Of a DNA stretch of 64,000 nt, positions 17,505 through 50,300 are shown piece by piece. The position numbers were made by a program, and so were the translations under genes. The notes beneath the pieces are model-generated. The model was given only the letters and a program-made list of their open reading frames with translations. It did not search any database and had not been told where the DNA came from. The stretch is taken from contig CATNEN010000024.1 of NCBI GenBank assembly GCA_950097015.1, positions 1,922,001 through 1,986,000 of the forward strand, read 5' to 3'. The stretch is from Macrostomum hystrix (Eukaryota > Animalia > Platyhelminthes). The first letter of the stretch is position 1; every line of letters begins with the position of its first letter.

Positions 17505-17824
17505 ACACTGAACTTCGCATATTTCGCTCTCACAATCAAAGCGACGATTGGATTGAGTTTTGTTGTTGAACTTTGCTATACTTCCATGGCACTAAATAAT
17601 GCATTTAAAGTAACCTGGGCGGTTATTATTATTGACACGCTTTTAGCCCCAACTCTGATAAGCCGATTATTAAAAAACTCGCCGCTTGATTCGAGCCGCG
17701 TGGAACACTTGCAGGGCCACAGCACCGGGTGATAAGGTAAAGTTTTTGCCTTGACAAATAAAGCAGTTGCTTTATATTCTGGGAGCTCTTCACCTGCTAA
17801 ACATCAAGCGACTTGCCGACGCTC

Positions 17825-18937
17825 ATGCAGAATTTCCAGCTGACTCCGAATACTTACAAGAGCGAATCCGACCATCGTTGCTTTGCCATGTCTATTGCGA
17901 ATACCAGTGACTGGGACTTGGCCGTTCAGCTACACTTTTATTCGCATCTCATTACCTTCCCTCTTGTGATTGTTCTCGGATCTGGATTCAATATATTCTG
18001 CATCGTGGTCTTGCTCCGCCAGAAAGTATTCCCAACTCCTGCTAGCGCCTTCATGCTGTGGATCTCCTTTAACGATGCTCTCGCACTCCTGTTGAAGGGA
18101 ACCACGCACTACCTGGAGGAATTGGCGAACTACAATGTCACCTGGTGGCCTTATAAAAGTGGCTCATTAAAAAACTCAAGCCTCTTTGCGTGTCAACTAT
18201 ACTCAGCCCTTACCTACTACTTCCTGTGCGGCTGTCCGTTCTACCTGGCTGGTCTCACGTTGCAGCGAGCATTGATCACATTTTGTCCGATTCGGCGGCC
18301 CATCCTGCGCGACTCCATCATCGTGCTGGCTGTGCTCACCTGCCTGGCGCTCTCCTTTCCGGTGTTTCGCGTCTTTTTAGTCGACTACCGTCCCGAATCA
18401 CCAGCCTCTTGTCGCCTGACAAGTTTTGAGAGTTCCACCACGCGCGCCTTCTTCTACTACCAGACCGTGCTGTCAAACCTGTGCATCTTCGCCTTCCTTC
18501 TCCTTGGTTCCGTGTGCATCACAGTCGTGCTGTATTGCCGTCAGTCTAGCAACCGAAATCGAAATAGTCTGCGAGTGTCACGCACTCTACTACTAATGAA
18601 CTTCAGCTTCCTTGTGACTTTTCTGCCTGTGGGTGTCTACCAGATTATCATGGTCGGTCTTGGTGAAGATCCAATTAAACATAGGCTACTTTTCAGCTTT
18701 CTAAACTCTATTATGTACTTGAATTTCGCGGTCAACGGCCTAAGTTATCTGGCGAGTCAACGCTTCCGTACCTGCGCTAGACAGTGTTTGTATCGCGGCT
18801 GTGGCGATGGCACTGACAGCTGTGGCTGGTGGCGCCGTGTGAAGACAATGCGAAGACGTCTAACGACTGTGGTGCACACAACTGGCGACTGCAGTGCGAA
18901 ATGTCCTGAACAACAGCGCGAGACTACAAGCAGATAG
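17825..18937 (+). CDS. Intronless class A (rhodopsin-like) GPCR, divergent, peptide-receptor-like
   Basis: Seven hydrophobic segments, TM1 GFN, TM2 SFNDAL, Cys at the top of TM3 and in ECL2, TM3 LQRA (DRY position), TM6 FLP, TM7 NFAVNGLSY followed by helix-8 SQRFR. The start is ATG 17825 or 17888; the TTG at 17813 in the ORF track is not a likely start. Confidence 0.85.
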   Translation: MQNFQLTPNTYKSESDHRCFAMSIANTSDWDLAVQLHFYSHLITFPLVIVLGSGFNIFCIVVLLRQKVFPTPASAFMLWISFNDALALLLKGTTHYLEELANYNVTWWPYKSGSLKNSSLFACQLYSALTYYFLCGCPFYLAGLTLQRALITFCPIRRPILRDSIIVLAVLTCLALSFPVFRVFLVDYRPESPASCRLTSFESSTTRAFFYYQTVLSNLCIFAFLLLGSVCITVVLYCRQSSNRNRNSLRVSRTLLLMNFSFLVTFLPVGVYQIIMVGLGEDPIKHRLLFSFLNSIMYLNFAVNGLSYLASQRFRTCARQCLYRGCGDGTDSCGWWRRVKTMRRRLTTVVHTTGDCSAKCPEQQRETTSR

Positions 18938-19560: not shown

Positions 19561-19858
19561 AATGCCGTAACTTTCAGGTAGACATGCATGCATGCACGCA
19601 TATTCGTTGCGAAACAGCACTTAAGTTTAAGTATAAAATTTTGCATAATTAGAGCGAAACTGCTTACGTAGTTGCACATAATTTTCACCATAGACAAACA
19701 GTAAGCGTTAGTTTCTGTGGTAAAATGCGCGTTCGAGCGTACAATATACCACAGCGTCTTTTAAAACAGCAGCCGAGCGTGCACTGGCTGACAAATCCGT
19801 GTAAAATTTCCTCTTTAATTATTTGTCGTATCGAGACGAAAAAAATAAACAATTCGAA

Positions 19859-20752
19859 ATGAACGCATGCCCATTCTGCTATACCAAAGTTTCGAAGAAG
19901 AATGCCACAAAGCACTTTGCTGATAAGCATTCGGATATAGTTTTAAGCTTCGACTGGAGCGCAATGTCTGAGGATAGGCGACCCTCAGCGACTGCATCAT
20001 ACAACGCCAAGGCAAAGGCTGTATGGAAGATCCTACGGTTAAGTCGGAACGGTGTCCATCCAATCCTCACATTTTGTCCATACTGCGACAAGTGTTTGCA
20101 GCATCTCAGAAAGCACATCGCGCGATCATGCAAGCGCAAACCGGATACTGCAGCTGTCCCACTGTTGCCTACTGACAGGGAAAATGCACCCACAGACTTA
20201 ATGGACGCTGGTGAAGACACCAGATGGCCTCGTATCGTGTGTGCGTCGTCTGCAGGACCATCTTCGCAGCAGTTTGAACAACGTGATCCGTCGACAGCAC
20301 CAGCAGTGGTCACGACTGTTGACTCTGCCGTGCCATCGATTAGTAGCCATCATTTATACAGTAATTTCCTCATAGATGCATTCAACAGACTGCGCGAGCA
20401 GGCGGCCAGTATGAGCCAGATTCTGGAGCATGCCAGCAGCGATCAGCTTGGTGTTGATACTCGGCATGCGTCCATCATGCGGACTGGCGCGCAGAATCTG
20501 GTCGATCTGGCTGAAGCGCTAATGCAGTACGCGACAGATTATAATCTGGTTGGAGTCACGAATCCTGTCAGCTTGCTGAACCCAATCCGTCAGCGACATG
20601 CGCAGACTCAGACCTGCGATTCTGACGACTTATATAGTGAACATTCTGCCAGCGACGATCGATCGGCTGACATCAGTGTTAAACGTCCTGAACAACAGCT
20701 TCAACACAGTGTTGAAATTTTTCAATTAATCAGCATGCAGATGTCAGAGTAG
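19859..20752 (+). CDS. Orphan intronless protein (~297 aa) with two zinc-finger-like motifs
   Basis: Open frame from ATG 19859; CPFC-x11-H-x4-H and CPYC-x9-H-x4-C motifs; predicted helical C-terminal part. No family recognised. Confidence 0.55.
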   Translation: MNACPFCYTKVSKKNATKHFADKHSDIVLSFDWSAMSEDRRPSATASYNAKAKAVWKILRLSRNGVHPILTFCPYCDKCLQHLRKHIARSCKRKPDTAAVPLLPTDRENAPTDLMDAGEDTRWPRIVCASSAGPSSQQFEQRDPSTAPAVVTTVDSAVPSISSHHLYSNFLIDAFNRLREQAASMSQILEHASSDQLGVDTRHASIMRTGAQNLVDLAEALMQYATDYNLVGVTNPVSLLNPIRQRHAQTQTCDSDDLYSEHSASDDRSADISVKRPEQQLQHSVEIFQLISMQMSE

Positions 20753-22232: not shown

Positions 22233-23057
22233 TCGAATCTAAAGGCCAAGGCTGAGCATGATTCGCATCAATTGCAGCTGACAGTTTGATCTTAAAGGCT
22301 GGTTCATATTGACCTGCGGTTTAGGCCGCTGGCAGTTTGAGTTAGGCCAACAAGTCATGCTCCAGTTACTGCCCTCGACTGGCATTCAAGGCTACGTTAT
22401 AGCTTAAGCAAAAAACGAAAGAAAAAAAATACATAGGTGGTGCATGAAATTGCGAAAGCGAGAAATTCTATTTAAGCTGGGAAAGGCTGGCTATATAAAA
22501 CACGCAATACGTGCATGCAGCTCATGCAATTTAACTATGCGCACATTGGTACATAACTGAAGCATGTGTAAGCTAAAGTTGAAAGTCATTTATTCGCCAT
22601 TGATAATGGATCCTTTTGTTTAAGGTGTCATAAAGCAGATCAGAAAAGTATGAAGACGATTTCATCAGGAACATTTGTTGGCATTCGAAACTGAATTTAA
22701 GCGAAAAGGGACATTGCATTACGCCGGAGAAAAACAAATTAAAAGAACAAAATTGTTCTTGTTTGTTCATGATTTTTACAAAATTAAAAGTAGTGTATCG
22801 TCTTTAGACATAAATGTTTTAGAAAGGCAGCATTTTTAGTGTAATAAAGTATATTTACTTTATACGAATAGTCACATGTTCTACGAAAAGTTCTATGGTT
22901 ATCATTTCAATCAGGTAATAAAATATATTTAACCTATATCGAGGAGAAGATCGAATTTAAGCTGACTACGGCTATGACTTAATATTTATGGGAAATTAAT
23001 AAAGTTGTTATAAATTAAATCTTGAAAACGTAATCATTAATATTTTTATTTATGATT

Positions 23058-23846
23058 TGTCGTAGGTCTCCTTACTTATATCTTACAGCTGCCACTAAGT
23101 TGTCGTAGGCCTCCTTCTTAACTCCCACTGCTTTCACCAATTTGTCGTAGGCTCTCTCCTCTTTGGGTTTAAATATCACCGATACTATTTTATTAAATAT
23201 TAACAATTGCTTATTTCACACCTTGAATTAACCTTTGAAATAACTCTTAATTTCCTTTGTCTATGACTTAGTTATTCTTCATAGGCTAGCTATGTATCCT
23301 CTTATTACATATGCATATATTGCTTAACTTGGCCAGATAGGCTACTTTCCTTCCAAAATTGGTAGCGTTCTCACGAGTGTCCGAGCGGCAAGACACTTTC
23401 TTTCTCCCGTTACTTACTCTCAATTATCTGGCTTTCTGGTTTCCCAGTCTTCAAGGCTTCCAATGGACTGGAGTTGTCCAACTTTGCACACAGTGCCAGT
23501 CACCAATCTGGGAGTTTACCCTCTGTTCCTTTAGTTTTAACACTATTCTGCTTTTGATCAATATCTCCTTCTTTATTCCTTCGAATATTCCTGGCTTGTG
23601 TATGAACACGGACCTGCTTTTCCTCTCTCTCTCTAAATAAGAACTCTTTGAACACTTTGAAACTTTACTCTCCTTTATTCAGCTTAGAACTGGGCGCGAG
23701 GCACCGGTTGGGGCTAAAATGCGCTTGTATTTATACTAAGAATTGAGGTGGATGACAAAGCATAGTAAAACAAAGACAAAAAGATCGAGGAAAACATTTG
23801 GCGGTAATTCAAGTTAGCAATATACGATAAATTTGGGCCTGCCTCA
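23058..23846 (-). repeat. 3' LTR
   Basis: Same length as 31161-31949 with no mismatch seen by eye; minus-strand TATAAATA at 23728-23735 and AATAAA near 23674-23679; short purine tract AGGGGAAG just inside (about 23853-23860). Confidence 0.97.
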
Positions 23847-23880
23847 ACTGGCTTCCCCTATATAAATTTTTGAATAAGTA

Positions 23881-23992
23881 AAACGCGTGACAAAATTTAT
23901 AAAAAGTAGAAAGTACAAATATCAGGCACACAACGCGTGACAAAATTTAAAAAAAGTAGAAAGTACAAATATCAGGCACACAACGCGTGACG
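23881..23992. repeat. 50-bp tandem repeat with three ACGCGTGA motifs in the retroelement 3' non-coding region
   Basis: ACGCGT at 23883, 23933 and 23983. Confidence 0.9.
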
Positions 23993-24024
23993 AAAAGCAA
24001 AAATAAAACGGTTAAATTGTCCTT

Positions 24025-25188
24025 TTAAGAGAAATAGCACTCATTAGGCAGTCTTTCGTTGCGGGGCCAACCGACTGTGCTCGCCATCCACCTCAACTCA
24101 ATGTTGAGGGGGATGCGATTCACCGGTAAGGGGCTGCGGTTGATTACTCTCCTAGCATATTGCACGGCCCTCTTCCAGGCGGTAATGCAGTATCCTCTGG
24201 CGAATTTGTCGCACAGTACCCGCATAGCAGAATAAATTGCGGCGCGCTGTGGGTACCGCCGGTCATTATTGTACAACCCGGCGTCCAGGACATATCCTTT
24301 CATGTGACGAATTAGCCGCGTGTAGTGTTCATGTTGGGCCTTCGGAATTTCAGCCATCGCTCGGGCGAATTCTTCTTGGCTCTCCGCAGGCTCCATTTCG
24401 ATGTCTTCTTCCGTATCCGAGTTCGGCTGCGGCTGAGGCGACTGCTGGAACTGCCGCTCTGGCTGCTGCTGCTGCGGCGGCTGCGGCTGCTGCGATTGCT
24501 GCGGCTGGGGCTGCTTCCGTGATGGCTGTGGCGGTGGCTGTGGCTGTGGCTGCGGCTGCTGCTGCTGCGACGACTGTGGCTGCGATGACTGCGGCTGTTG
24601 CTGAAAATCCGTCCGGTACTGGTACTGGATCGGTACCTTGATAGCCTTTGGCGCTATATGCCGTCCCTTAGGCGGTGGCCGTGGTTGAGGGCTCGGCTTC
24701 GGCGCTATCCATCGTCGTCCGGCAGCACGCCGACCTGGTTCCTGGCTTGGAGCTTCAATTGCCTTGGTGACCCTGGCGGCTTCAGATGGCTTAGCTTGAA
24801 CAGCTTCCATTGCTGCCACCGGTGCTATCGACTGCTGCTGGAGCAAATTCAACCGCGTGGTGGCGTCGAGGTACACCGGTAGCCTAGAGCTCGGCAATCT
24901 CTTCTTGTTCGCGGTCTCATCTTGCATAGTGGTGGCGGCTCGCTTTTGGGTGTTCACTCTCGGTTGTTGACCGACCATGGATGGCTGCGTTCTTTGCCGT
25001 AGTGGCGCCTCGAGTCCTTCTGGTTCGTCAATTATTGCTTGGATGATATCGTCTTCGCCATTTCCGGCTCCGTTCTCTTGCTCTACTCTGTCTGGCTCAG
25101 TGTTCTCATTGTCCGAGAAATCCACTGTAACTGCTTCTAGCAACTTCTCAAATTCGCTTGCGCTTATGGCTTCTTGATCTTGCTCCAT
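24025..25188 (-). CDS. Accessory ORF3 of the Gypsy element (387 aa; acidic N-terminus, Q/P-rich linker, ~110-aa globular C-terminal domain); not env-like
   Basis: Intact ATG-to-stop ORF between pol and the 3' LTR, same strand as gag-pol, with its own promoter motifs upstream; no signal peptide or TM segment. Confidence 0.8.
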   Translation of the reverse strand: MEQDQEAISASEFEKLLEAVTVDFSDNENTEPDRVEQENGAGNGEDDIIQAIIDEPEGLEAPLRQRTQPSMVGQQPRVNTQKRAATTMQDETANKKRLPSSRLPVYLDATTRLNLLQQQSIAPVAAMEAVQAKPSEAARVTKAIEAPSQEPGRRAAGRRWIAPKPSPQPRPPPKGRHIAPKAIKVPIQYQYRTDFQQQPQSSQPQSSQQQQPQPQPQPPPQPSRKQPQPQQSQQPQPPQQQQPERQFQQSPQPQPNSDTEEDIEMEPAESQEEFARAMAEIPKAQHEHYTRLIRHMKGYVLDAGLYNNDRRYPQRAAIYSAMRVLCDKFARGYCITAWKRAVQYARRVINRSPLPVNRIPLNIELRWMASTVGWPRNERLPNECYFS

Positions 25189-25251
25189 TCTTCTTTGTCA
25201 GTATGACTTCTTCTCTCTGCTTATGTTTGTTTTGTGTTCCCAGGGCTCTGG

Positions 25252-25332
25252 TTTATATAGGCGCGAAACTGACACTCTTCATTGTGTCTCAGATTTCATT
25301 GGGCTATACTGGCTTATTTCTAATCCTATTGG
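25252..25332 (-). promoter_or_regulatory. Internal Pol II promoter of ORF3: CCAAT, CCAAT, E2F-type site, TATA
   Basis: Minus-strand CCAAT at 25328-25332 and 25298-25302, TTTCGCGC at 25261-25268, TATATAAA at 25252-25259; ATG 64 nt downstream of the TATA. Confidence 0.6.
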
Positions 25333-25451
25333 TTCCCTACTTGATTTCAATTAACCCCTACCTAATTGACTGGAAGTGGCTAACCCCTACTCCCTTTCTA
25401 TCCCTTGCACGTGGTCTCCTTGTGTTATTATTGCGTCACCCCAATCTCTGC

Positions 25452-28400
25452 CTAGATCTGTAAATTCCCTATTATACTGAACACGGTGGCAATCCTCTGC
25501 AAATAGCCTTCAAACCTCGCGGGGGGTCTGATTTGTCTGCGCGGACGGCTTGTCACTCCTTCCCTTTCTTCATTCTGTGCAATGTACATGCCTCCTTCTG
25601 AGGTGGCTGTCGCCAGACCCTCAGCTGTCCCTTCGCTTTCGCTCTCCTCTTCACTGCTCGTAGCCTCAGGCTCGGTGTGTGATTCATCCTCCACTTCTAT
25701 CTCAGCTCCTAGTTCCAAATCTTCTCCATTAATTTCACTTGGGTTTTCTCTAAAATGACATTGCCATTCTAATCTGTCTTCTTCCTCTTCGGATTCATCT
25801 TCCTCTGTTAGAACAACTCTTCCCTTCTCCTTCGGCTGGCTTCCCCTAACTTTGACCTCTGTCTTCTTAGCTTTCTTCTCTGGTGCGGCCTGGCTTCCCC
25901 TAATTAATTCCTCTTGGGTCGAATTAGGCACAATAGTTATGTTGTCTCTATGGACAATCATGACATTGCCCACTAGTTGTCCTTGCTCCTCCTTTTGCAC
26001 ACGAAACACTACATCTGAGATTTGCTCTATTACTCTGAAGGCTGATCTCTTTTTCCTATGAAATTTGTGAGATTCCTCACTGTCCAACTGTGGATTATTA
26101 ATCAACACAAGACTTCCAACTGGGACTGTCTTAGGCAATTTGCTGTTTTTCGCAGACTCTTGTCTGTTACTGACAACCTTCTCCAATTTTCTTTTGACAA
26201 TGTCTCTCGCAATCTTCAATCGTGCGGCATGTTCTGTCACGTAAGATGGATAACTGGCGAATGACTTTGGTTGGCTGATTTGACTGTCCATAGGCAATAC
26301 TGCTTCCCGTCCAAATAACAGGTAGTGGGGAGTAAAGCCTGTGGTTTTGTTCACACTAGTGCGGACAGCAACTAATGCAGCTGGGATCATAAGGTCCCAA
26401 TCACTGTGATCTTTCTCAATGAGACAGGTTACTATTGATTTAATTTGCTTGTTAAATCTCTCCACCAATCCATTGCTTTGGGCATGGTAGGGTGTTGTAG
26501 ACGTATGCTTCACGTTGTACATTTCGCAAAAAGCTTTGAACTGCTTGCTAGCGAATGCCTTGCCATTGTCTGTGTGTAACCACTGACATTGCCCATACTC
26601 TGCGAAGATTCTTTCCTGTAAGATTTTGATCACAGTATCTGACTTTTGATTTCTAGTTGGGAATGCAAACGGATATCGAGTGGTGCTATCCACAATAGTT
26701 AGGACATACTTGTGCCCTCTTTTGCTCTCTTTGGATAGTGGTCCTATAAAATCGACATGCAGGCGATGGAAAGGTTCACTGATAGGGAACGATTGCACTG
26801 GCGCCTGAATCGGGTTTCCTCTCTTGCTTTCCAGGCACGGAATACACTCTGCGATATGAGCTTCCACTGCTTTGACCAATCCTGGTCTCCAAAATCTCTG
26901 CCTGACACGTTGAATTGTTTTATCGCGTCCCAAATGTCCTGCTAGGGGGCTATCATGAAGATCGCTGAGAACTAGCTTATCCAAGGACTGGGGCAGTACA
27001 ACTTTCCAACTGTCATCTTCGCTAATGATTAGCATCTCATTCTCTACCTTCATATCCTCAAAGAATTTCCTCATCTTCTTCAATTCTGGGCTGACAATTT
27101 CAGGTAACTGGGGATTGTTCTCTCCTGATTTCTTCCATTCAATTAGCACTTTAATTACTGGGTCATCTCTTTGTGACGCAATAATTTGCTCTCGTTTCAA
27201 TGGGCTGGGTAAGAAATCGGTCAATAACTTCTCGCACTTGCTACTTGTTGCTTGCAGCATATCCTCACTCTCAATAGGATTAAATTCTTCAGGAACTGGA
27301 CTCGGAAGCGGAATGCTGGAGTCATGTTCAAGTTCACTGGGAATTCTCACCTCTCCTTGTCCTGAGATAGTAGACTGGATCCTGCTATTGGGATCTAACG
27401 TCTTTTTCTCTCCTTCACTTAGGGCAGTCTGGGGCTGTGTCAAGCTACATGAGCTATCATTAGCCTTAACTTCCTGTCCTGACTCTTCCATTACACTGCA
27501 GCTTTGCACTATCGGCTCAATAACTTGCTCTGCTTCAGGGACATCAGCTGGTCTTCTTGACAGACTGTCAGCGTTCTGGTTCTTTGCACCGCTTCTGTGT
27601 TCTATATCGAACGAGAATTCGTTTAGGCGCTCGACCCACCGACCAAGAATTCCTTGAGCTTCTGTTTGCCTTAACAGCCAAATTATCGCCTTATGATCCG
27701 TTCTTGCCAAAAACTTCTTGCCTAACAGGTAGAAACGGAAATGCCTCATGGCATCCACTAGGGCTAAGAGTTCCTTTCTAGTGATAGGGTAGCGTTTTTC
27801 CGACTCTTTCATAGCTCGGCTGAAATAAGCTATGGGTCTCTCTATGCCATCTGATTGGATCTGGCTAAGTACAGCGCCAATACGGCTATCACTTGCATCG
27901 GTATCCAATACCATCTTCACCTTCTCATCATCCACAAATTCGGGATACGCTAAGACTTCAGTGGACATCATCCGGTTCTTTAGCGACTCAAACGCTTCGT
28001 CATGCTCTTTGCTCCATCTCTCTTGAAAGTTCTTAATTCCTTTCCTTGTTAGCTGGAAAAGGGGATGGGCAGCTTCTGCATAATTTTTAATGAAGCGGCT
28101 ATAGTAATTACATAGGCCAAGGAAACTGCGTAGCTCTTTCACATCTTTTGGCTTCGGCCAGGTCTTAATAGCTTCAATCTTCGTCTCATCCGTACGGATA
28201 CCTTCTGTACTGATCACATGTCCTAAGTACTTTAATTCTCTATGAAAAAGGTTACATTTCTTTGGCCTTAGCTTCAATCCTGCGATTATTAATCTCTTGA
28301 ACACTTCCTTTAGATGGGAAAGGTGGTCATTAAAGTTCTTCGAATAGGTAACTATATCGTCTATATACGACATAGCAAATTGATGTTGAATCCCTAAAAG

Positions 28401-30200
28401 TACAAGATTCATGAGCCTCTGGAAGGTTCCTGGGGCATTGGACAAACCTTGCGCCATAACCTCATACTCAAACTGGCCTCGGGTTAAAGTAGAGAAGGCG
28501 GTCATGAACTTGTGTTCTTCCTTTATTGGCACCTGCCAATAACCAGAATTCAAATCGAGACTACTAAAATATTGACTACCAGATAAGTAGGTGAAAGTCT
28601 GATGAATGTTAGGAAGCGGATACGGAACATAGTTCACCTTCGAGTTTAACACTCTGAAATCACTTACAATCCGTATGGATCCGTCCTTTTTCGGCACAAT
28701 GACTAGTGGTGTAGAATAAGTTGAATAACTGGGCCTGATTAAATTTTTAGCCAACATGTCATCCAACTGTGTGTCGACTTGCTTTTGGAGATGGGGTGGT
28801 ATTCTCCTAGTTGGGATCCTCACGGGAGTCTCATCCTTCAGTGAGATCTCATGTGTGATCAGATGGGTTAAACCCATATCCAACTCATTCTGTGAAAAAG
28901 CTTCGCGATGCTCCTTCATCAATTCGATGACTGATTTCCTCTGGTCATCGGTAAGATCTTGACCAATATTAACTTCATTAATCCAGGCATCTTCCACAGT
29001 TTGTGTCTGGTTGACTCGTCCGGTAGGTTGACTGACTATTTCCTTTTCGGCTTCGAAATATTTCAACTCACTTGCCTTCACTGGTTTGGCTAGGCCTACC
29101 AATGTTGACTTCGACAGCTTCACCTCAACTGGATTGTTATTCACAATCTCCACAATGGCGGAACCTTCTCGCATTGTGACTAGAGTGGGAGCCATCTCGA
29201 CTGTCAATTCTTTGGCTTTTACGCCTTCGCCAATCATACTCACTGTCATAGGTGTTCCAAAATTGCACTCGGCATCTCTCGCCAATCTCACTGGGATTCT
29301 CAACGCACTATTTGCAGGAATCACTACTTTCTCCTGAGTATACACTCTGCATACTTTTACAGGTAGATGAGTGAACTGCATAGGAATGCTTGCTCCTTCA
29401 TTTAGAATCAACATGCCTTTAGCAAGATGAATGCTATCACAATGTCCTAGGAAAAATTTCATCCCTAAGATATTGTCGCTTTCATGTCCACACAAAAGGA
29501 ATTCTATTTCTATCTGGATGTCTCCGAATCTAACTGGAATACAACTCTCGCCTTCCAATTGTACTCTGGTTCCGTCGAAAGTAGAGACTCGCTTGTCTGT
29601 ACTTCTTATCTGTTCTGGCTTAAGTAATTTTGACCAAATAGATTTGCTCAAAAAGCTGTTCCTAGCCCCTGTGTCTAGGATAAAATTAATTTCCTGATTC
29701 TTAAATTTTCCTACAATTACTGCTTCAAATCCTTCAGGTTTAATAAGTTCTAGTTTAGAATTAGAAACAAATACTTTGCGTTTGTTCTCACGTGTCCTTG
29801 AGTACTTTCCAGATGTTGCGGCGGCTGATCTCGGTGCTGATACTTCGGAAGCTGGTTCCTCCAGGATTGACATGCAGGGGGCTGACGCAATGGTTGCTGA
29901 TACAGATGCCGCTGGGGCTAACGCAATGGGTGCTGACGCAGATGGTGCTGACGCAATGGGTGCTGACGCAGATGGTGCTGACGCAATGGGTGCTGACGCA
30001 GATGGTGCTAACGCAATGGGTGCTGACGCAGATGGTGCTGACGTAATGGGTGCTGATACTCGATACTTCGGCTGCTTCTGTGCATTACACAATCTCGACG
30101 ACTGGGCTGGGTATCGCCGATTCTTAGAGGCCTGCTGTTCGAATCGGGGTTTACTAGAGGGGCGCGGCCTCGACTCTCGTCCCTCGATATTCAGTTTCCC
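25452..30200 (-). CDS. pol: Pol polyprotein (protease, RT, RNase H, integrase), translated by -1 frameshift from gag
   Basis: ILDTGA protease; RT FSSLDLNSGYWQ...YIDD; RNase H DASD...E...TDHKA; integrase HHCC plus VDFIG/HTDNG/NGLVERFN and a degenerate GPY/F module. The frame is open back to 30263, overlapping the end of gag. Confidence 0.97.
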   Translation of the reverse strand, partial: GKLNIEGRESRPRPSSKPRFEQQASKNRRYPAQSSRLCNAQKQPKYRVSAPITSAPSASAPIALAPSASAPIASAPSASAPIASAPSASAPIALAPAASVSATIASAPCMSILEEPASEVSAPRSAAATSGKYSRTRENKRKVFVSNSKLELIKPEGFEAVIVGKFKNQEINFILDTGARNSFLSKSIWSKLLKPEQIRSTDKRVSTFDGTRVQLEGESCIPVRFGDIQIEIEFLLCGHESDNILGMKFFLGHCDSIHLAKGMLILNEGASIPMQFTHLPVKVCRVYTQEKVVIPANSALRIPVRLARDAECNFGTPMTVSMIGEGVKAKELTVEMAPTLVTMREGSAIVEIVNNNPVEVKLSKSTLVGLAKPVKASELKYFEAEKEIVSQPTGRVNQTQTVEDAWINEVNIGQDLTDDQRKSVIELMKEHREAFSQNELDMGLTHLITHEISLKDETPVRIPTRRIPPHLQKQVDTQLDDMLAKNLIRPSYSTYSTPLVIVPKKDGSIRIVSDFRVLNSKVNYVPYPLPNIHQTFTYLSGSQYFSSLDLNSGYWQVPIKEEHKFMTAFSTLTRGQFEYEVMAQGLSNAPGTFQRLMNLVLLGIQHQFAMSYIDDIVTYSKNFNDHLSHLKEVFKRLIIAGLKLRPKKCNLFHRELKYLGHVISTEGIRTDETKIEAIKTWPKPKDVKELRSFLGLCNYYSRFIKNYAEAAHPLFQLTRKGIKNFQERWSKEHDEAFESLKNRMMSTEVLAYPEFVDDEKVKMVLDTDASDSRIGAVLSQIQSDGIERPIAYFSRAMKESEKRYPITRKELLALVDAMRHFRFYLLGKKFLARTDHKAIIWLLRQTEAQGILGRWVERLNEFSFDIEHRSGAKNQNADSLSRRPADVPEAEQVIEPIVQSCSVMEESGQEVKANDSSCSLTQPQTALSEGEKKTLDPNSRIQSTISGQGEVRIPSELEHDSSIPLPSPVPEEFNPIESEDMLQATSSKCEKLLTDFLPSPLKREQIIASQRDDPVIKVLIEWKKSGENNPQLPEIVSPELKKMRKFFEDMKVENEMLIISEDDSWKVVLPQSLDKLVLSDLHDSPLAGHLGRDKTIQRVRQRFWRPGLVKAVEAHIAECIPCLESKRGNPIQAPVQSFPISEPFHRLHVDFIGPLSKESKRGHKYVLTIVDSTTRYPFAFPTRNQKSDTVIKILQERIFAEYGQCQWLHTDNGKAFASKQFKAFCEMYNVKHTSTTPYHAQSNGLVERFNKQIKSIVTCLIEKDHSDWDLMIPAALVAVRTSVNKTTGFTPHYLLFGREAVLPMDSQISQPKSFASYPSYVTEHAARLKIARDIVKRKLEKVVSNRQESAKNSKLPKTVPVGSLVLINNPQLDSEESHKFHRKKRSAFRVIEQISDVVFRVQKEEQGQLVGNVMIVHRDNITIVPNSTQEELIRGSQAAPEKKAKKTEVKVRGSQPKEKGRVVLTEEDESEEEEDRLEWQCHFRENPSEINGEDLELGAEIEVEDESHTEPEATSSEEESESEGTAEGLATATSEGGMYIAQNEEREGVTSRPRRQIRPPARFEGYLQRIATVFSIIGNLQI

Positions 30201-31090
30201 TGATATCGGTACTGCTGCTGCTGCTGTGAGCTCTTGCAGTACTTGGCAATATGCCCAACTTTGTTACAGTTAAAACATGTCGGCGGAGGCCTCGACTGTT
30301 GCTGCGGCTTCAGGTACGTCTTCGGCTGCATGAGCGGCTGAGGTGTTACCCTCTGGCATTCAGCCTTCCTTCTTTCCTGAATCAGGTCTTCAATCAGCTT
30401 CTTCTGCTTATTGATTTCATACTTCTGCCTCTCGATGGTCTCCTCCATCTTCTTATTCCGATCTTCGTCGAATTGCTCGTCTTTAACAACTCGAACTCCA
30501 CTCTTGTGTGACATATGCCACGCTGCTTCGATGCGTCTCAACATCCTTCTAGCCTCTTGCAGGCTGGCTGGCTGTGCAAATATTAACTTTTCCCTAGTGT
30601 CGGAAGGGATTCTCGCTCCTTTAATGAACTGCTCTACTACTTCCTCCTCCCTTTGTTCAGCATTCATATTGGGGAATGCTTGCGCGGACAACTCAATCAA
30701 GGCATCTGCGAATGAGTCAACGGGCTCATTCCTCCCTTGCATTCTACCTCTAAATTCCTCCCTAAACTCGGCTGAGCTTCCTAGTCTTCCGAATCTTTCG
30801 ATTAGTCTTTCCTTCAACTCCTCATACGTTAAGTCTTCTGGCAGATTCAACCGCTGAACGGCTGCAAATGCAGTCGCGAGGTCTAGATTAGCTAACAGCT
30901 CATTCTTCCTATGTTCATCCTGTTCTAATCCTTCATTGTCGCATCTCTGATCAAATGCTTTGAGCCAAATTCTGATGTCCTGGCTAGGTGTGTACTTTTG
31001 GATCTTTACGTGTCTCATGGGTCCTAATTCTAGTCTATTTCTTAATTCTTCTGCTAACAAGCCAATAGCATCATTAATTCCTGCGGCCAT
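30191..31090 (-). CDS. gag: Gag (299 aa) with CCHC zinc knuckle
   Basis: ATG 55 nt after the PBS; capsid-like region (RMQGRNEPVDSFADAL...QFIKG); CFNCNKVGHIAKYC. Confidence 0.95.
   Translation of the reverse strand: MAAGINDAIGLLAEELRNRLELGPMRHVKIQKYTPSQDIRIWLKAFDQRCDNEGLEQDEHRKNELLANLDLATAFAAVQRLNLPEDLTYEELKERLIERFGRLGSSAEFREEFRGRMQGRNEPVDSFADALIELSAQAFPNMNAEQREEEVVEQFIKGARIPSDTREKLIFAQPASLQEARRMLRRIEAAWHMSHKSGVRVVKDEQFDEDRNKKMEETIERQKYEINKQKKLIEDLIQERRKAECQRVTPQPLMQPKTYLKPQQQSRPPPTCFNCNKVGHIAKYCKSSQQQQQYRYQGN
30194..30200 (-). promoter_or_regulatory. -1 ribosomal frameshift slippery site G GGA AAC
   Basis: Heptamer is in gag frame directly before the gag TGA; a -1 shift enters the pol frame (GGG AAA CTG). 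Confidence 0.85.
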
Positions 31091-31144
31091 ACCTTTATCT
31101 AACTTTCAAACTGACTGTGTGCTTTAGCTGGATTCCAATCCTTT

Positions 31145-31157
31145 ACCGCTGTCACCA
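31145..31157 (-). promoter_or_regulatory. Primer binding site, tRNA-Leu-like (TGGTGACAGCGGT)
   Basis: Starts with TGG 3 nt inside the 5' LTR; resembles the complement of tRNA-Leu(AAG/UAG) 3' ends (TGGTGGCAGCGGT) with one mismatch. Confidence 0.75.
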
Positions 31158-31160
31158 AGT

Positions 31161-31949
31161 TGTCGTAGGTCTCCTTACTTATATCTTACAGCTGCCACTA
31201 AGTTGTCGTAGGCCTCCTTCTTAACTCCCACTGCTTTCACCAATTTGTCGTAGGCTCTCTCCTCTTTGGGTTTAAATATCACCGATACTATTTTATTAAA
31301 TATTAACAATTGCTTATTTCACACCTTGAATTAACCTTTGAAATAACTCTTAATTTCCTTTGTCTATGACTTAGTTATTCTTCATAGGCTAGCTATGTAT
31401 CCTCTTATTACATATGCATATATTGCTTAACTTGGCCAGATAGGCTACTTTCCTTCCAAAATTGGTAGCGTTCTCACGAGTGTCCGAGCGGCAAGACACT
31501 TTCTTTCTCCCGTTACTTACTCTCAATTATCTGGCTTTCTGGTTTCCCAGTCTTCAAGGCTTCCAATGGACTGGAGTTGTCCAACTTTGCACACAGTGCC
31601 AGTCACCAATCTGGGAGTTTACCCTCTGTTCCTTTAGTTTTAACACTATTCTGCTTTTGATCAATATCTCCTTCTTTATTCCTTCGAATATTCCTGGCTT
31701 GTGTATGAACACGGACCTGCTTTTCCTCTCTCTCTCTAAATAAGAACTCTTTGAACACTTTGAAACTTTACTCTCCTTTATTCAGCTTAGAACTGGGCGC
31801 GAGGCACCGGTTGGGGCTAAAATGCGCTTGTATTTATACTAAGAATTGAGGTGGATGACAAAGCATAGTAAAACAAAGACAAAAAGATCGAGGAAAACAT
31901 TTGGCGGTAATTCAAGTTAGCAATATACGATAAATTTGGGCCTGCCTCA
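31161..31949 (-). repeat. 5' LTR
   Basis: Copy of 23058-23846 at offset 8103; TATAAATA at 31831-31838. Confidence 0.97.
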
Positions 31950-32553
31950 GATTTTTTATAGTAATTATCATTCCCTGTTAGAAGCATTAGAGTTAGGCCT
32001 ATGCTCTAGCATAGGCTAAGGCATATGTGATGTCAAATTACAAGGATGCAGGATGAAAAAAAAACTGTGCCTACTTCTTGTTTTCGGGTTTACAGGTTTA
32101 CAATAAGCTTAATTCGACTTTTTTGCCACAGCACATCCCTTCCAACCCTTCGCAGTTGTACTTCTATGCCAACAAATATGTGAGTTGAGTAGCCTAGGCC
32201 TGGCCTTATTTTTTAAATCAAACTTAAGATAGGGCCTAGGCCCTATTATTATTTTTTAAGTTAGGCCTAGGCCCACACAGGATGTCTGCTAAAAGCCGAT
32301 TTTAGAGGAAAATTTGTGATCTGAACCCCACCTAAAAGTGAAAGTTTAATCCTAGGCCTATAAGTAAAAATGGTGTCTTAAAAAAGCTGAATGTTTCAGT
32401 GATAAAAGTGGTTTAGATAGACTATAATGTGACTTTGTCTTTAAGATATGTTCACAGTGTGCTAGGCCTACAGATTTTCTTTTTTTGCTGGGCCTACTTA
32501 GAGACATTTTTGCTCTTAAAATCTATAGTTATGTGTTTTGCTAATGGTTGATG

Positions 32554-44350: not shown

Positions 44351-47300
44351 GTGCTGACATCCTTATCCCAATCTGTGTTGCAGTACTCAGGACTTGAGGC
44401 CTGGCTGCCTTTCTGCCTGGCATGCCTTCTGTTGGCGCTAGGCAACTATGCCTATCGGACTGGCGCCCTGGGCTTTCGCGTCACCAAATTTCGGCGCCGC
44501 GATCAGGTCCGATTTTATCTGCGACGTGTGGCCAGGCGGCTGTTTGGTCGCAGCCAATTGGCGACCTCCGCGACGGATGCGCCTCAACGCTGGCGAAATT
44601 TGCTACAGGTTGGAATTCTTATACCTTTTACTTTGTATAACTGCATTGATTCCCTAACATGTGATTGCTGACATCATGTGATTGCTGACATCATGTTATT
44701 GCTGACATCATGTGATTGCTGACATCATGTGATTGCTGACATCATGTGATTGCTGACATCATGTGATTGCTGACATCATGTGATTGCTGACATCATGTGA
44801 TTGCTGACATCATGTGATTGCTGACATCATGTGATTGCTGACATCATGTGATTGCTGACATCATGTGATTGCTGACATCATGTGATTGCTGACATCATGT
44901 GATTGCTGACATCATGTGATTGCTGACATCATGTGATTGCTGACATCATGTGATTGCTGACATCATGTGATTGCTGACATCATGTGATTGCTGACATCAT
45001 GTAATTGCTGACATCATGTGATTGCTGACATCATGTGATTGCTGACATCATGTAATTGCTGACATCATGTGATTGCTGACATCATGTAATTTTATGATCC
45101 TACATCTTGGGATGATTGTCACTCTACAACGAGTAGAGTTCTAATAGTATGTACTTTGCTTCTATCGTCAGGAGCAGCTGCCGCAGCAGCCGTCGCTATC
45201 CAGCCTCGACCTTAACGAGCGTCGCGTTTCGTCCATCGGCAAACGCCTGCTGCGACAGAAGACCCAGGGCGACCTGATGATCGCTGCTCCGTCGTCATCC
45301 TCGATGTCCGGCGTCAGCGCCGCCGATGCAGCGGACAGCGACTACAGCGAGGAGGAATTGTCATCGTCCGGGTCGACGCTGAAAACTCGCGCCGCGCTGC
45401 AAAGACGCGGCTTGGACCGGCTGGCTGAGGCGTTCTGGCCATTGCGAACACTGCAGCCGGCTGACATTGAGTCCCTGATTGTCAGCACCAGCTGCTGGCA
45501 GCCCGGCACAATGATTGAAGCCGATTCAGCTTCGGCCATCATCCTGGTGGACTCAGGAGCTGTCGAAGTCCGCCTATTCGGCCGGCAAACGATTGTTGAA
45601 GTGGTGCCAGCGGGTGAGCACATATTTAGCCCACTAATGCTACTCGGCCAGTTGTGCAATTATCGGCCTGGATTTCGCGACTCGCACTCGTCTGTTAGCG
45701 CCTATCTGCGAGCCTATCCCGGCCTTCAGCCTACTGAAATTCGTGTCCTACCATTTCGTTCATTGTGCAACGCTCTTGGTTTAGCCAGTCAGCATAGCAA
45801 CCCGGTGAATCCGGTGGCTATCAACTGCTGGCGACATTTCACCAAGGTCTTTGCCCAGGGCCTGCTGCCTGCTCTGGTGCCGGACGAGCCAGCTGCCGTT
45901 GATCACACTTCTGGTGGCTGCGGCGTCACCGCCTGCGGCCTCTGGGGCTCCCGCCGATCGGACTCGGAGGCTGTCAAACTGCCCCAATTGGCGTGCATTC
46001 TTCAACTGCCTGCGGACAAGTTTAAAGAGGCCGTGTCGGTCATCGACTATCCGACTGCAGGCGATGTTGTGGCACGTGCTGGCGATCGCTTCACCTGCCT
46101 CTATTTTGTGCTGCGCGGCCGACTGTGCCAGCGACTCGGGACAAAGACTGTATCAGTGAGTACCCCACATGTCTATGCTTGGACCGTATCTATGCTCAGA
46201 TCCTCAGACTGAACCGTGTCTATGCTCAGATCGTCAGACTGAACCGTATCTATGCTCAGATCCTCAGACTGAACCGTGTCTATGCTCAGATCCTCAGACT
46301 GAACCGTATCTATGCTCAGATCGTCAGACTGAACCGTGTCGATGCTCAGATCGTCAGACTGAACCGTGTCTATGCTCAGATCGTCAGACTGAACCGTGTC
46401 TATGCTCAGATCCTCAGACTGAACCGTATCTATGCTCAGATCCTCAGACTGAACCGTGTCTATGCTCAGATCCTCAGACTGAACCGTGTCTATGCTCAGA
46501 TCCTCAGACTGAACCGTGTCTATGCTCAGATCCTCAGACTGAACCGTGTCTATGCTCAGATCCTCAGACTGAACCGTATCTATGCTCAGATCCTCAGACT
46601 GAACCAGATCTATGCTCAGATCCTCAGACTGAACCGTATCTATGCTCAGATCCTCAGACTGAACCGTATCTATGCTCAGATCCTCAGACTGAACCGTGTC
46701 TATGCTCAGATCCTCAGACTGAACCGTATCTATGCTCAGATCCTCAGACTGAACCGTGTCTATGCTCAGATCCTCAGACTGAACCGGATCTATGCTCAGA
46801 TCCTCAGACTGAACCGTATCTATGCTCAGATCCTCAGACTGAACCGTGTCTATGCTCAGATCCTCAGACTGAACCGTGTCTATACTCAGATCGTCAGACT
46901 AAACCATGTCCATATCTGGGTAGGTCACAACATCCACTCGTGTTTCTAACTCAGCTGATGTTAGTACACATGCTGGTAACCAATTGAAAACACAAATTGC
47001 TTCCCTAGCGCTGAAAATCGAACTCCTGAACGCTCAGTACTCAAGTCCAACGCTCTCACCGCTGAGCTGCGAGCTCGCTTAACCTTTGCCTTAACCAACC
47101 TAGTTAACCATTTCACATTTCAGGTGGCCGGTCCTGGCGACTTCTTCGGCCTAGTGAACTACTGCGGCCAGCTGCCCCTGGCCTCTGATGTCTACTGCCG
47201 GTCGCCAGCCACTAGCCTAGCCTGCCTGGACCCCAGCCGCCTGCCTGATGGGCCAGTTTGCCGCCTATTGGCCAGCTGTCTGGCCAGAGTGTCCGCCTGC

Positions 47301-50300
47301 TTCCTTGCCACAGTCAGTCCTCTGGTGCGCACCCTGGATGCCGCTCTGCGCTTTGAATCGGTGAAATGCGGCGCCAGCCTGACTGGCCGGACTGGGGTGG
47401 ACGATCCGCACTGCCATTTCGTCCTGTCCGGCCGCCTACAGCAGCGCCAGCCTGGCTCGGCCGAGTTCTATGGCAAAGGTCGCATTATTAATCTGGTCGC
47501 GGCGCTTAATCGCTCCCAGGCTCCGTTGCCAACAGAATCTGTGCGCGACTCTGAACTGCTGCGTCTCAGCAGGCACATGGTCTCATTCCTGTCCAAACGC
47601 TATCAGGGATTCTCGCACCTGTTAGTATCCACCCTGGCCAATGCCCTGCTAGACTCCTACGAAGCTGCCCTGCCATCTTCGACTGGCTGCAATCCGCAAT
47701 CGTCGCCAGTGAAAACGGTGGCGGTCATTCCAGCTCAGGACTACCTGCCGGCTGCTCACTTTGCCGGCTGTCTGGCCGGCCTACTGCCCGCCCCGGTGCG
47801 CCATCTGTCCTCCGAGCTGGTCTGCAGAAAGTTTCACAAATCCGTCTGGGAGCTGGGCGTTCGCGACGACGCCCTGCAGAGCTGGCTGGCCGCCGGCGAG
47901 GAGGAGAACAATTTTGTTATATTTGCCGCCGACTTTGAGCTGACGCCATGGACTCTGATGTGCATTCGTCTGGCTGACATCATCCTGGTGCTGTCCGATC
48001 ATGACGCTTCGCCCGTACCCTGCCTGACTGAGCACTTCTGCGCCCGCTATAGTCGAGCCCAAATTGAACTGCTCCTCCTGCATCCGAAGCGTCGGCTGCG
48101 AGTTCCGCCCGGCTCAACCGCACCATTCCTGACTGCCCGGCCATGGGTTCGGCAGCATCTCCATCTGCGCCTGCCGGACAGTCTCCGGCTGCATCGGACT
48201 CGTCGGGTGTCGCTCCGAGTAGCGCCGGATATGCTCAGGCTGGCCCGGCGACTCACCGGCTCCTCGATCGGCCTGGCGCTGGGCGGCGGCGGCGCCAGAG
48301 GTGCCGCACACCCGGCTGTTATCAAACTGCTGTGCGATAAGCGGGTACCAATCGACTTACTCAGCGGCACCAGTATTGGCTCCCTAATGGCCAGTCTGTG
48401 GGCCCTGGACACTAGCCTAGACTCGTTGATGTACAGCGCTAAGAAGACTTTTAGTGAGGCCGGTTCGCTGCCGATGCAACTGTTGGACATGACACTGCCA
48501 TTGGTGTCGTTCTTTCGCGGCGGCCTGATAAATCGCATTCTGTTGAAATGTTTCGATCGCAATTTACACATTGAAGATCTCTGGCTTCCCTGCTATTTTG
48601 TGACCACTGATCTGCGCACCTGCCGAATGCGAGTCATCAGTCGGGGCCGATTGTGGAAGGCGGTGCGGGCTAGCATGTCCTATCCCATCATCCTGCCGCC
48701 TATATGGAGCGACGATGGCGACCTGCTTGTTGACGGCTGCTTTGTTAACAATCTACCGGCTGATGTTCTCAGGTGAGCAGGAGCCAATTTACGCCTTCTT
48801 GTCCTAACTGAGTCTATACCGGCTATTTTCGTTTTTCTACACATATAGGTATTAGCCTCATCGATCCGACATAATTATAAATTTCGAATTTTCGATACAT
48901 ATCGGGTATTAGCCTAGAGCTTTGATTATTCATTGCTAAATTTAAGCAATTAGGGTATTCGATTTCCTTACATATTGCCGTCAGTGTCACTAGTGAAATA
49001 ATTCCGCGTCCTCGGACACGCTCTTATAATTTTTTCTCTACATATCGGTTTCAATCCCCATCGCAGGTATCAGGCTGGCGCCGCCAAAGTAATAGCGGTT
49101 GACATCTCAGAGAGCAGCAGCCTTGAGCAGGGCGGCTATCGACTCTATGGCGACAGTCTGTCAGGCTTTAGGGCCTTCCTAACCCGCGGCATTCGCTATC
49201 CGAGCCTCATCGATGTGCAGCTGCGGCTGGCCAGCATCACATCCAGCATGAATGTCCGGCAGCACAACCTGCAGGAAGCCTCCTGGTGCTGGTACCTGAC
49301 TCCGCCTGTGCACGCCTACAGCATCTCCAGCTTTGCCAGCTTTCAGCGCATCTACGAAGCCGCCGTCGACTACGCCGAGGCCAAATGGAATGGGGACAAC
49401 GCGACCGCTGTCTGGTTTCCGGAGCTGCTGCTGGCCGACAAGGCTGGCAATGCCTCGTCAACTGCAGGAGGCATTCAAGTGGGTTTCTTAATTTCCCCTT
49501 GTCTTGTGATTTATTAACGGGATTATAGATTTGATAGCTGGCATTATCAAAGGAAATCTAGATCCTAAAAGCCATCTGGGATCTCTAGGCTGGAATCATG
49601 GGGGTGGATGTGGGATCTCTAGGCTGGAATCATGGGGGTGGATGTGGGATCTCTAGGCTGGAATCATGGGGGTGGATGTGGGATCTCTAGGCTGGAATCA
49701 TGGGGGTGGATGTGGGATCTCTAGGCTGGAATCATGGGGTGGATGTGGGATCTCTAGGCTGGAATCATGGGGTGGATGTGGGATCTCTAGGCTGGAATCA
49801 TGGGGTGGATGTGGGATCTCTAGGCTGGAATCTTGGGATGGATGTGGGATCTCTAGGCTGGAATCATGGGGGTGGATGTGGGATCTCTAGGCTGGAATCA
49901 TGGGGGTGGATGTGGGATCTCTAGGCTGGAATCATGGGGTGGATGTGGGATCTCTAGGCTGGAATCATGGGGTGGATGTGGGATCTCTAGGCTGGAATCA
50001 TGGGGTGGATGTGGGATCTCTAGGCTGGAATCATGGGGTGGATGTGGGATCTCTAGGCTGGAATCATGGGGTGGATGTGGGATCTCTAGGCTGGAATCAT
50101 GGGGGTGGATGTGGGATCTCTAGGCTGGAATCATGGGGTGGATGTGGGATCTCTAGGCTGGAATCATGGGGGTGGATGTGGGATCTCTAGGCTGGAATCA
50201 TGGGGTGGATGTGGGATCTCTAGGCTGGAATCATGGGGTGGATGTGGGATCTCTAGACTGGAATCATGGGGTGGATGTGGGATCTCTAGGCTGGAATCAT

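Follow-up and report, generated by a model that had tools for sequence, protein, structure and literature searches.

Structure and age of the element

Through analysis of the window, by which the whole 64-kb stretch of DNA is meant, a full-length LTR retrotransposon of the Ty3/Mdg4 (gypsy-type) superfamily has been identified on the minus strand at positions 23058-31949 (8.9 kb). All features of the element described below lie on this strand. The element is bounded by two LTRs of 789 nt each with TG...CA termini, located at 31161-31949 (5' LTR) and 23058-23846 (3' LTR), which are identical to each other at an offset of 8103 nt. Comparison of the flanks revealed a 4-bp target-site duplication, AATC, on either side of the element, with the upstream copy at 31950-31953 and the downstream copy at 23054-23057. 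The insertion of the element is very recent, since the two LTRs are identical. No further copy of the element is present within the 64-kb window.

Directly after the 5' LTR lies a putative primer-binding stretch (31140-31160), recognized by its position and its TGG-initial sequence; no tRNA was matched to it. A tRNA scan of the 64-kb window gave zero tRNA genes, and an Rfam search of the entire window returned nothing. The gag gene (30191-31090) is an unbroken ORF of 299 aa with a zf-CCHC match and a weak Retrotrans_gag match. The pol frame (25452-30263) is also unbroken; it is open from position 30263, shares about 70 nt with the end of gag, lying there in the -1 frame, and contains a listed ORF of 1546 aa which starts at 30092. 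The Pfam domains of pol are arranged successively as protease (residues 128-214), RVT_1 (466-627), RNase H (693-826) and integrase (1034-1203). The membership of the element in Ty3/Mdg4 is established by its LTRs and target-site duplication, and by the order of the pol domains together with the zinc knuckle of gag.

Behind pol, a third gene of 387 codons, ORF3, is located at 24025-25188. It is followed by a tandem repeat with a 50-nt unit present 2.3 times (23882-23996), identified by repeat analysis, and by a putative polypurine tract (23847-23862), a purine-rich segment read from the sequence that abuts the 3' LTR. The 3' LTR carries one TATA-like site at 23735 and AATAAA at 23679, 23577 and 23194; a pattern scan of the LTR with a general-knowledge consensus found no canonical three-unit heat-shock element. 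The gag, pol and ORF3 frames contain neither internal stops nor frameshifts; since the LTRs are identical, this intactness of the present copy is no evidence of selection. The initial annotation had described a gypsy element with a third gene after pol, and this description is confirmed by the LTRs, the target-site duplication, the gag and pol domains and the 387-codon ORF3.

Composition of the ORF3 protein

ORF3 starts with an ATG codon, 263 nt 3' of the pol stop, and the same frame is closed by a stop codon 12 nt 5' of this ATG. Its product consists of consecutive sections with characteristic features; (i) an acidic N-terminus, residues 1-60, in which 20 amino acids are acidic and 2 are basic; (ii) a basic region with 24 basic and 8 acidic amino acids (residues 61-195); (iii) a linker at residues 196-256 (24421-24603), in which 48 of the 61 positions are Q or P; (iv) a C-terminal domain of mixed composition at residues 257-387 (24025-24420), which is near neutral (20 basic versus 17 acidic amino acids). 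The whole N-terminal part (24604-25188) is predicted to be disordered on the basis of its composition and low pLDDT. The protein contains only 3 Cys. The acidic N-terminus and the poly-Q/P linker had been reported in the initial annotation and both are recovered here. The linker is encoded by repeats of 6-18 nt and looks like a product of repeat slippage rather than a Q-rich activation domain.

The basic patches resembling nuclear localisation signals, which had likewise been proposed, were recovered in part: the basic region at residues 61-195 and a bipartite basic pattern at residues 82-97 are present, and a strict monopartite nuclear-localisation pattern was not found in ORF3. A leucine-rich export-like pattern occurs in the acidic N-terminus. 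The import and export patterns were taken as written in PMC10309623 and are short regular expressions of low specificity.

The claim that the third gene is not an env gene proved correct. ORF3 contains no hydrophobic segment (the best 19-residue Kyte-Doolittle mean is 0.63), no furin-type R-x-K/R-R site and no match to a Pfam env family. The lack of a hydrophobic segment, a furin site and a signal peptide-like start (the N-terminus being acidic) rules out an env of the errantivirus type, and ORF3 is predicted from these features to be a soluble, non-membrane protein. The idea of a duplicated capsid domain was also considered; ORF3 showed no similarity to gag upon comparison and was rejected as a gag copy.

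Relatives of ORF3

The C-terminal 131 residues of ORF3 were used as a query against 1.84 billion representative proteins. Of the two proteins returned, only P0001 is a true relative; it is a hypothetical Macrostomum lignano protein of 349 aa. The other, P0002, is a bacterial PAS-repeat histidine kinase and was rejected as spurious, the match being driven by repeats. The C-terminal domains of ORF3 and P0001 are 26% identical over 110 residues, align without gaps and share the same C-terminal end, with a pairwise E of 1e-13. The two proteins have in common two short collinear motifs within their N-terminal parts, placed in ORF3 at residues 46-55 (acidic-hydrophobic) and 60-73 (containing Pro, Arg and Thr). 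Directly after the second shared motif, P0001 has a K-R-x-R pattern, in a place equivalent to that of the bipartite pattern of ORF3, and the export-like pattern noted above is present in its acidic N-terminus as well. At the position of the linker P0001 has an Ala/Ser/Pro-rich stretch, thus the Q/P composition is not conserved.

Further searches gave no additional relatives. There was no Pfam match, at E 0.1 or at E <= 10, to the whole ORF3, to its two halves or to P0001. A sequence search of solved structures, with ORF3 and with a two-sequence profile, returned noise only (E > 0.5). A word search of 5.8 billion protein clusters was blank for the C-terminal region of ORF3 and retrieved only P0001 itself when P0001 was the query.

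Given the length of ORF3, the shared architecture of its distant relative and its confident fold, a chance ORF is very unlikely; ORF3 is a genuine gene. Judged by these searches, the ORF3 family is undescribed and very narrow, and the case for selection on ORF3 would rest on one distant relative. ORF3 represents an accessory protein family, hitherto undescribed, of a flatworm model capable of regeneration. Gene callers may miss such ORFs, because ORF3 is absent from the protein collections searched.

Predicted fold of the C-terminal domain

The C-terminal domain was modelled with AlphaFold from the ORF3 and P0001 sequences. The prediction is a five-helix bundle with a pLDDT of 78 and a pTM of 0.74, its helices extending over approximately residues 268-371, which bears out the folded C-terminal domain of about 110 aa reported in the initial annotation. 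A model of the whole ORF3 from the single sequence reached a pLDDT of 45 and was set aside. Foldseek comparison of the domain with the PDB and with BFVD, a library of viral structures, gave no match at E <= 0.001; the matches above this threshold were generic helical bundles, and the top one was a designed helical bundle. The predicted fold is uninformative on function, as it has no known relative in the PDB or BFVD.

Spacer motifs and expression of ORF3

The 263 nt between pol and ORF3 (25189-25451) form a non-coding spacer with a promoter-like cluster of motifs at 25252-25332. The motifs which the initial annotation had placed here are all present on the ORF3 strand: a CCAAT box at 25332-25328, a second CCAAT box at 25302-25298, the E2F-like site TTTCGCGC at 25268-25261 and the TATA box TATATAAA at 25259-25252. 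The two CCAAT boxes are 30 nt apart. The consensus patterns for the E2F and TATA sites are degenerate patterns from general knowledge and were not derived from a particular organism. The CCAAT-CCAAT-E2F-TATA arrangement occurs once on both strands of the 64-kb window (128 kb), its E2F-like site is the only one on either strand that directly precedes a TATA box, and none of the dinucleotide shuffles of the spacer (0/20,000) contained all parts of the cluster; as the cluster pattern was defined post hoc, these uniqueness and shuffle figures cannot be read as the probability that the cluster is functional. The stretch from the TATA box to the ORF3 start is free of ATGs, and the start codon is flanked by A in position -3 and G in position +4. 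Two short upstream ORFs, noted by eye, lie further 5' in the spacer.

A subgenomic mRNA would serve for the translation of ORF3. The cleanest candidate for the 5' end of such an mRNA is located just 3' of the TATA box; the leader would then measure about 35 nt and be free of upstream ATGs, with the start codon in a favourable context. A transcript of its own is plausible for ORF3, because the spacer is non-coding, the cluster is unique, no ATG separates the TATA box from the start codon, and transcripts beginning further upstream would include the short upstream ORFs. Taken together, these features suggest that the spacer may be a promoter, with a chance that falls somewhat short of even.

The same gene may instead be expressed without a promoter of its own, from an LTR-driven transcript, by cis-splicing or by spliced-leader trans-splicing, the motif cluster being a coincidence. 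Such a coincidence gains weight from the post hoc choice of the cluster. Cis-splicing would follow the example of env in errantiviruses, and the cerv mRNA of the Cer1 element is also spliced (PMC10309623). Trans-splicing affects 38.8% of M. lignano genes, and multi-gene precursors make up about 7% of the transcripts (PMC5730564), hence spliced-leader trans-splicing of polycistronic precursors, common as both are in this host lineage, provides a second route to ORF3 expression, one not taken into account in the initial annotation. Judged by eye only, donor-like GT dinucleotides are present in the short leader and at the start of gag, and a pyrimidine-rich AG is present in the spacer near 25371. 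However, an acceptor near 25371 would leave the two short upstream ORFs ahead of the ORF3 start, the AGs closer to this start have no pyrimidine tract, and the cluster occurs only once in 128 kb. Expression through splicing is possible, with the odds leaning against it.

In foamy viruses, an internal promoter drives the regulatory genes. The working model of a promoter in the spacer resembles this organization in that a second promoter downstream of pol would serve accessory or regulatory proteins. In contrast to foamy viruses, the element belongs to an unrelated lineage and its putative promoter is a motif cluster only; the likeness is one of layout.

A more specific role of the spacer, as a cell-cycle promoter of the NF-Y/E2F type that operates in stem or germ cells, is improbable on the motifs at hand. 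Neoblasts and the germline are the only dividing cells of this flatworm. That the element reads the stem-cell programme of its host to time its own expression, with an internal NF-Y/E2F promoter providing a nuclear accessory protein specifically in neoblasts and germline, is a long shot. In this flatworm the germline can arise from stem cells, hence the activity of an element in such cells is heritable. Should the spacer prove to be a promoter, the element would be one of the rare LTR retrotransposons that possess two transcription units; if it does not, ORF3 would represent a further lineage-specific third ORF, still useful for annotation.

Proposed role and origin of ORF3

The locus as a whole is best explained by a true accessory gene, ORF3, that occupies the env slot and whose product has an intracellular role and is made from a subgenomic mRNA; a probability of about 0.5 is assigned to this reading. 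The protein probably has an intracellular site of action, and a nuclear or shuttling protein is the most likely case. This location is suggested by the bipartite basic pattern of ORF3, the K-R-x-R pattern of P0001 and the export-like patterns of both proteins. ORF3 may serve the element as an adaptor or as a regulator, acting on the expression of the element or on the handling of its RNA in the way that CERV does for Cer1, and would have no part in cell entry. Regulation of transcription by ORF3 is plausible as a hypothesis. A classical transcription factor, on the other hand, finds no specific support; the domain is close to neutral in charge, and P0001 does not share the Q/P composition.

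ORF3 could also be a passenger, that is a captured host gene or gene fragment without a role in the life cycle of the element, with P0001 as the host paralogue. The GC3 of ORF3 is 0.61, compared to 0.43 for pol, 0.52 for gag and 0.60-0.68 for host exons in the window. The GC3 of ORF3 is thus nearer to that of host exons than to that of pol or gag, which hints that ORF3 was once taken from the host, or that P0001 is a host gene. P0001 is annotated just as a hypothetical protein and is represented by two identical protein records on 2 contigs only, and the ORF3 family is absent from all other retroelement proteins in the large search. However, two identical records on two contigs also fit a repeated element, and an identity of 26% speaks against a recent capture of the P0001 gene. 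ORF3 is moreover complete and sits in the canonical slot of accessory genes, where it has a start context, a spacer and a 3' region to itself. A passenger without function is on balance unlikely, and an accessory gene serving the element remains the preferred reading.

The initial annotation had also seen, by eye, a weak resemblance of the C-terminal helices to a BEN domain, so that ORF3 would be a sequence-specific transcription factor with a BEN-type DNA-binding domain. BEN domains are all-helical, and so is the predicted domain of ORF3. The resemblance was not borne out: neither ORF3 nor P0001 has a Pfam match at E <= 10, no solved BEN structure appears among the sequence, profile or fold matches, and the domain is near neutral in charge. 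Structure prediction gave a confident helical bundle, for which Foldseek returned no match at E <= 0.001 from the PDB or BFVD. A BEN-type domain in ORF3 is very improbable.

Still less tenable is a role as a substitute for the envelope or as a factor in transmission between cells, comparable to env or to the sORF2/FAST-like proteins known from the MDG1 group, since ORF3, although it occupies the env slot and envelope-independent transmission factors do exist in insect elements, has no signal peptide-like start, hydrophobic segment (maximum 0.63) or furin site, while sORF2 is a transmembrane protein of about 70 aa encoded upstream of gag (10.1101/2025.03.14.642691). The sORF2/FAST-like proteins are short and have a central hydrophobic helix with a polybasic patch behind it (10.1101/2025.03.14.642691); with 387 aa and no hydrophobic segment, ORF3 does not belong to them.

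Comparison with accessory genes of other elements

LTR retrotransposons have few extra genes, and for hardly any of these is a function known; that CERV and the small ORFs of the MDG1 group matter was shown only recently. Accessory third ORFs of gypsy-type elements are already known, and what is new here is the protein family of ORF3.

By position and type, the closest analogue of ORF3, though not a homologue, is CERV of the element Cer1. CERV is a nuclear, lineage-restricted protein of Caenorhabditis elegans which is needed for the export of unspliced element RNA (PMC10309623). Like CERV, ORF3 is not env-like and has relatives confined to a narrow host lineage, and it combines candidate nuclear localisation and export motifs with a structured domain and a flexible linker (PMC10309623). 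CERV itself acts in the nucleus on the RNA of its own element (PMC10309623), a role at which ORF3 hints through its nuclear import and export motifs only. The two also differ. They share no sequence similarity, the only true match of ORF3 in the large search (1.84e9 proteins) being the M. lignano protein. CERV consists of 517 aa, has a Cys-rich finger and is encoded by a spliced mRNA of 5 exons, some of them shared with gag (PMC10309623), whereas ORF3 consists of one continuous reading frame preceded by the 263-nt spacer, and its product has only 3 Cys.

ORF3 resembles the small ORFs of the MDG1 group in being an accessory ORF of a gypsy-type element without env (10.1101/2025.03.14.642691). 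The sORF1 protein of the 412 element, a member of this group, is predicted to be helical and localises to a subnuclear compartment (10.1101/2025.03.14.642691). In Drosophila, sORF1 and sORF2 of the MDG1 group are about 110 and 70 aa long, respectively, lie upstream of gag on the unspliced transcript, and sORF2 is transmembrane (10.1101/2025.03.14.642691). In contrast to this common setting, no similarity of sORF1 or sORF2 to ORF3 was found.

LTR elements of bdelloid rotifers encode varied third ORFs other than env and illustrate that this is frequent among gypsy-type elements of small invertebrates (PMC5408684), and the present element is comparable to them as a gypsy-type element of a small invertebrate with a non-env third ORF. 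The bdelloid proteins are recognisable enzymes, such as a GDSL esterase and a DEDDy exonuclease (PMC5408684), whereas the present ORF3 has no recognisable domain.

Genomic setting and related elements in Macrostomum

The Ty3/Mdg4 families described from M. lignano belong to the Mag, CsRN1, Gmr1/Osvaldo and Mdg3/Micropia clades (PMC12801592). The present element shares with them the host lineage and the superfamily, and the proteins closest to its pol come from the M. lignano genome. The survey of these families mentions no accessory genes and does not use the term ORF (PMC12801592). The best annotated relatives of pol are two M. lignano proteins, with 70% and 53% identity in the region from reverse transcriptase to integrase. 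Outside the element, the flanking ORFs resemble animal genes, namely a rhodopsin-type receptor and exons of a neuropathy-target-esterase-like gene. Exact look-up of seven ORFs of the window in the protein collection, among them ORF3, gag and the GPCR-like ORF, retrieved no identical sequence, and the host is taken to be Macrostomum or a near relative of it. Minisatellites are abundant throughout the window, and this dense packing fits the tandem-repeat content of the M. lignano genome, which amounts to 15% (PMC5730564).

LTR repeats and signals

The final ~100 nt of both LTRs of the Ty3/Mdg4 (gypsy-type) element are occupied by a tandem array with a unit of 42-43 nt, repeated 2.3-2.7 times (23055-23152 and 31143-31255). 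In the 5' LTR, this array extends into the putative primer-binding-like stretch that directly follows (31140-31160, reverse strand), and therefore the LTR terminus together with the primer-binding-like motif is reiterated within the LTR. In each LTR, AATAAA occurs three times and a TATA-like site once, the latter about 110 nt after the LTR start (3' copy: 23058-23846). A canonical three-unit heat-shock element was looked for in the same LTR (23058-23846) and not found, in contrast to the heat-induced families described in M. lignano (PMC12801592).

Tandem repeats inside the element

Close to its 5' end, ahead of the protease domain, the pol frame contains an in-frame 15/30-nt tandem array of about 5-10 copies (29913-30056), which encodes a short repeated peptide. 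A second array, with a 50-nt unit in 2.3 copies (23882-23996), is located between the 3' LTR and the stop codon of ORF3, the non-env third gene; every copy contains a small GC-rich hairpin-like stretch.

Genomic surroundings

The very long "ORFs" of 1434 aa (56661-60965) and 479 aa (1446-2885) gave no match in the Pfam search and were rejected as genes; both are translated minisatellite arrays, with a 21/42-nt unit (57134-60934) and a 42-nt unit (1494-2878), respectively. The element is flanked by host genes, namely a rhodopsin-type receptor-like ORF (17813-18937, forward strand) and a neuropathy-target-esterase-like gene, the exons of which (45277-48776, forward strand) encode cNMP-binding, NTE P-loop-like and patatin domains. 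An ORF of 309 aa (19823-20752, forward strand) is situated between the element and the receptor-like ORF, and its sole match, to the zinc-binding zf-Di19, is sub-threshold. A 30-nt tandem array (46183-46910) falls inside the span of the neuropathy-target-esterase-like gene.
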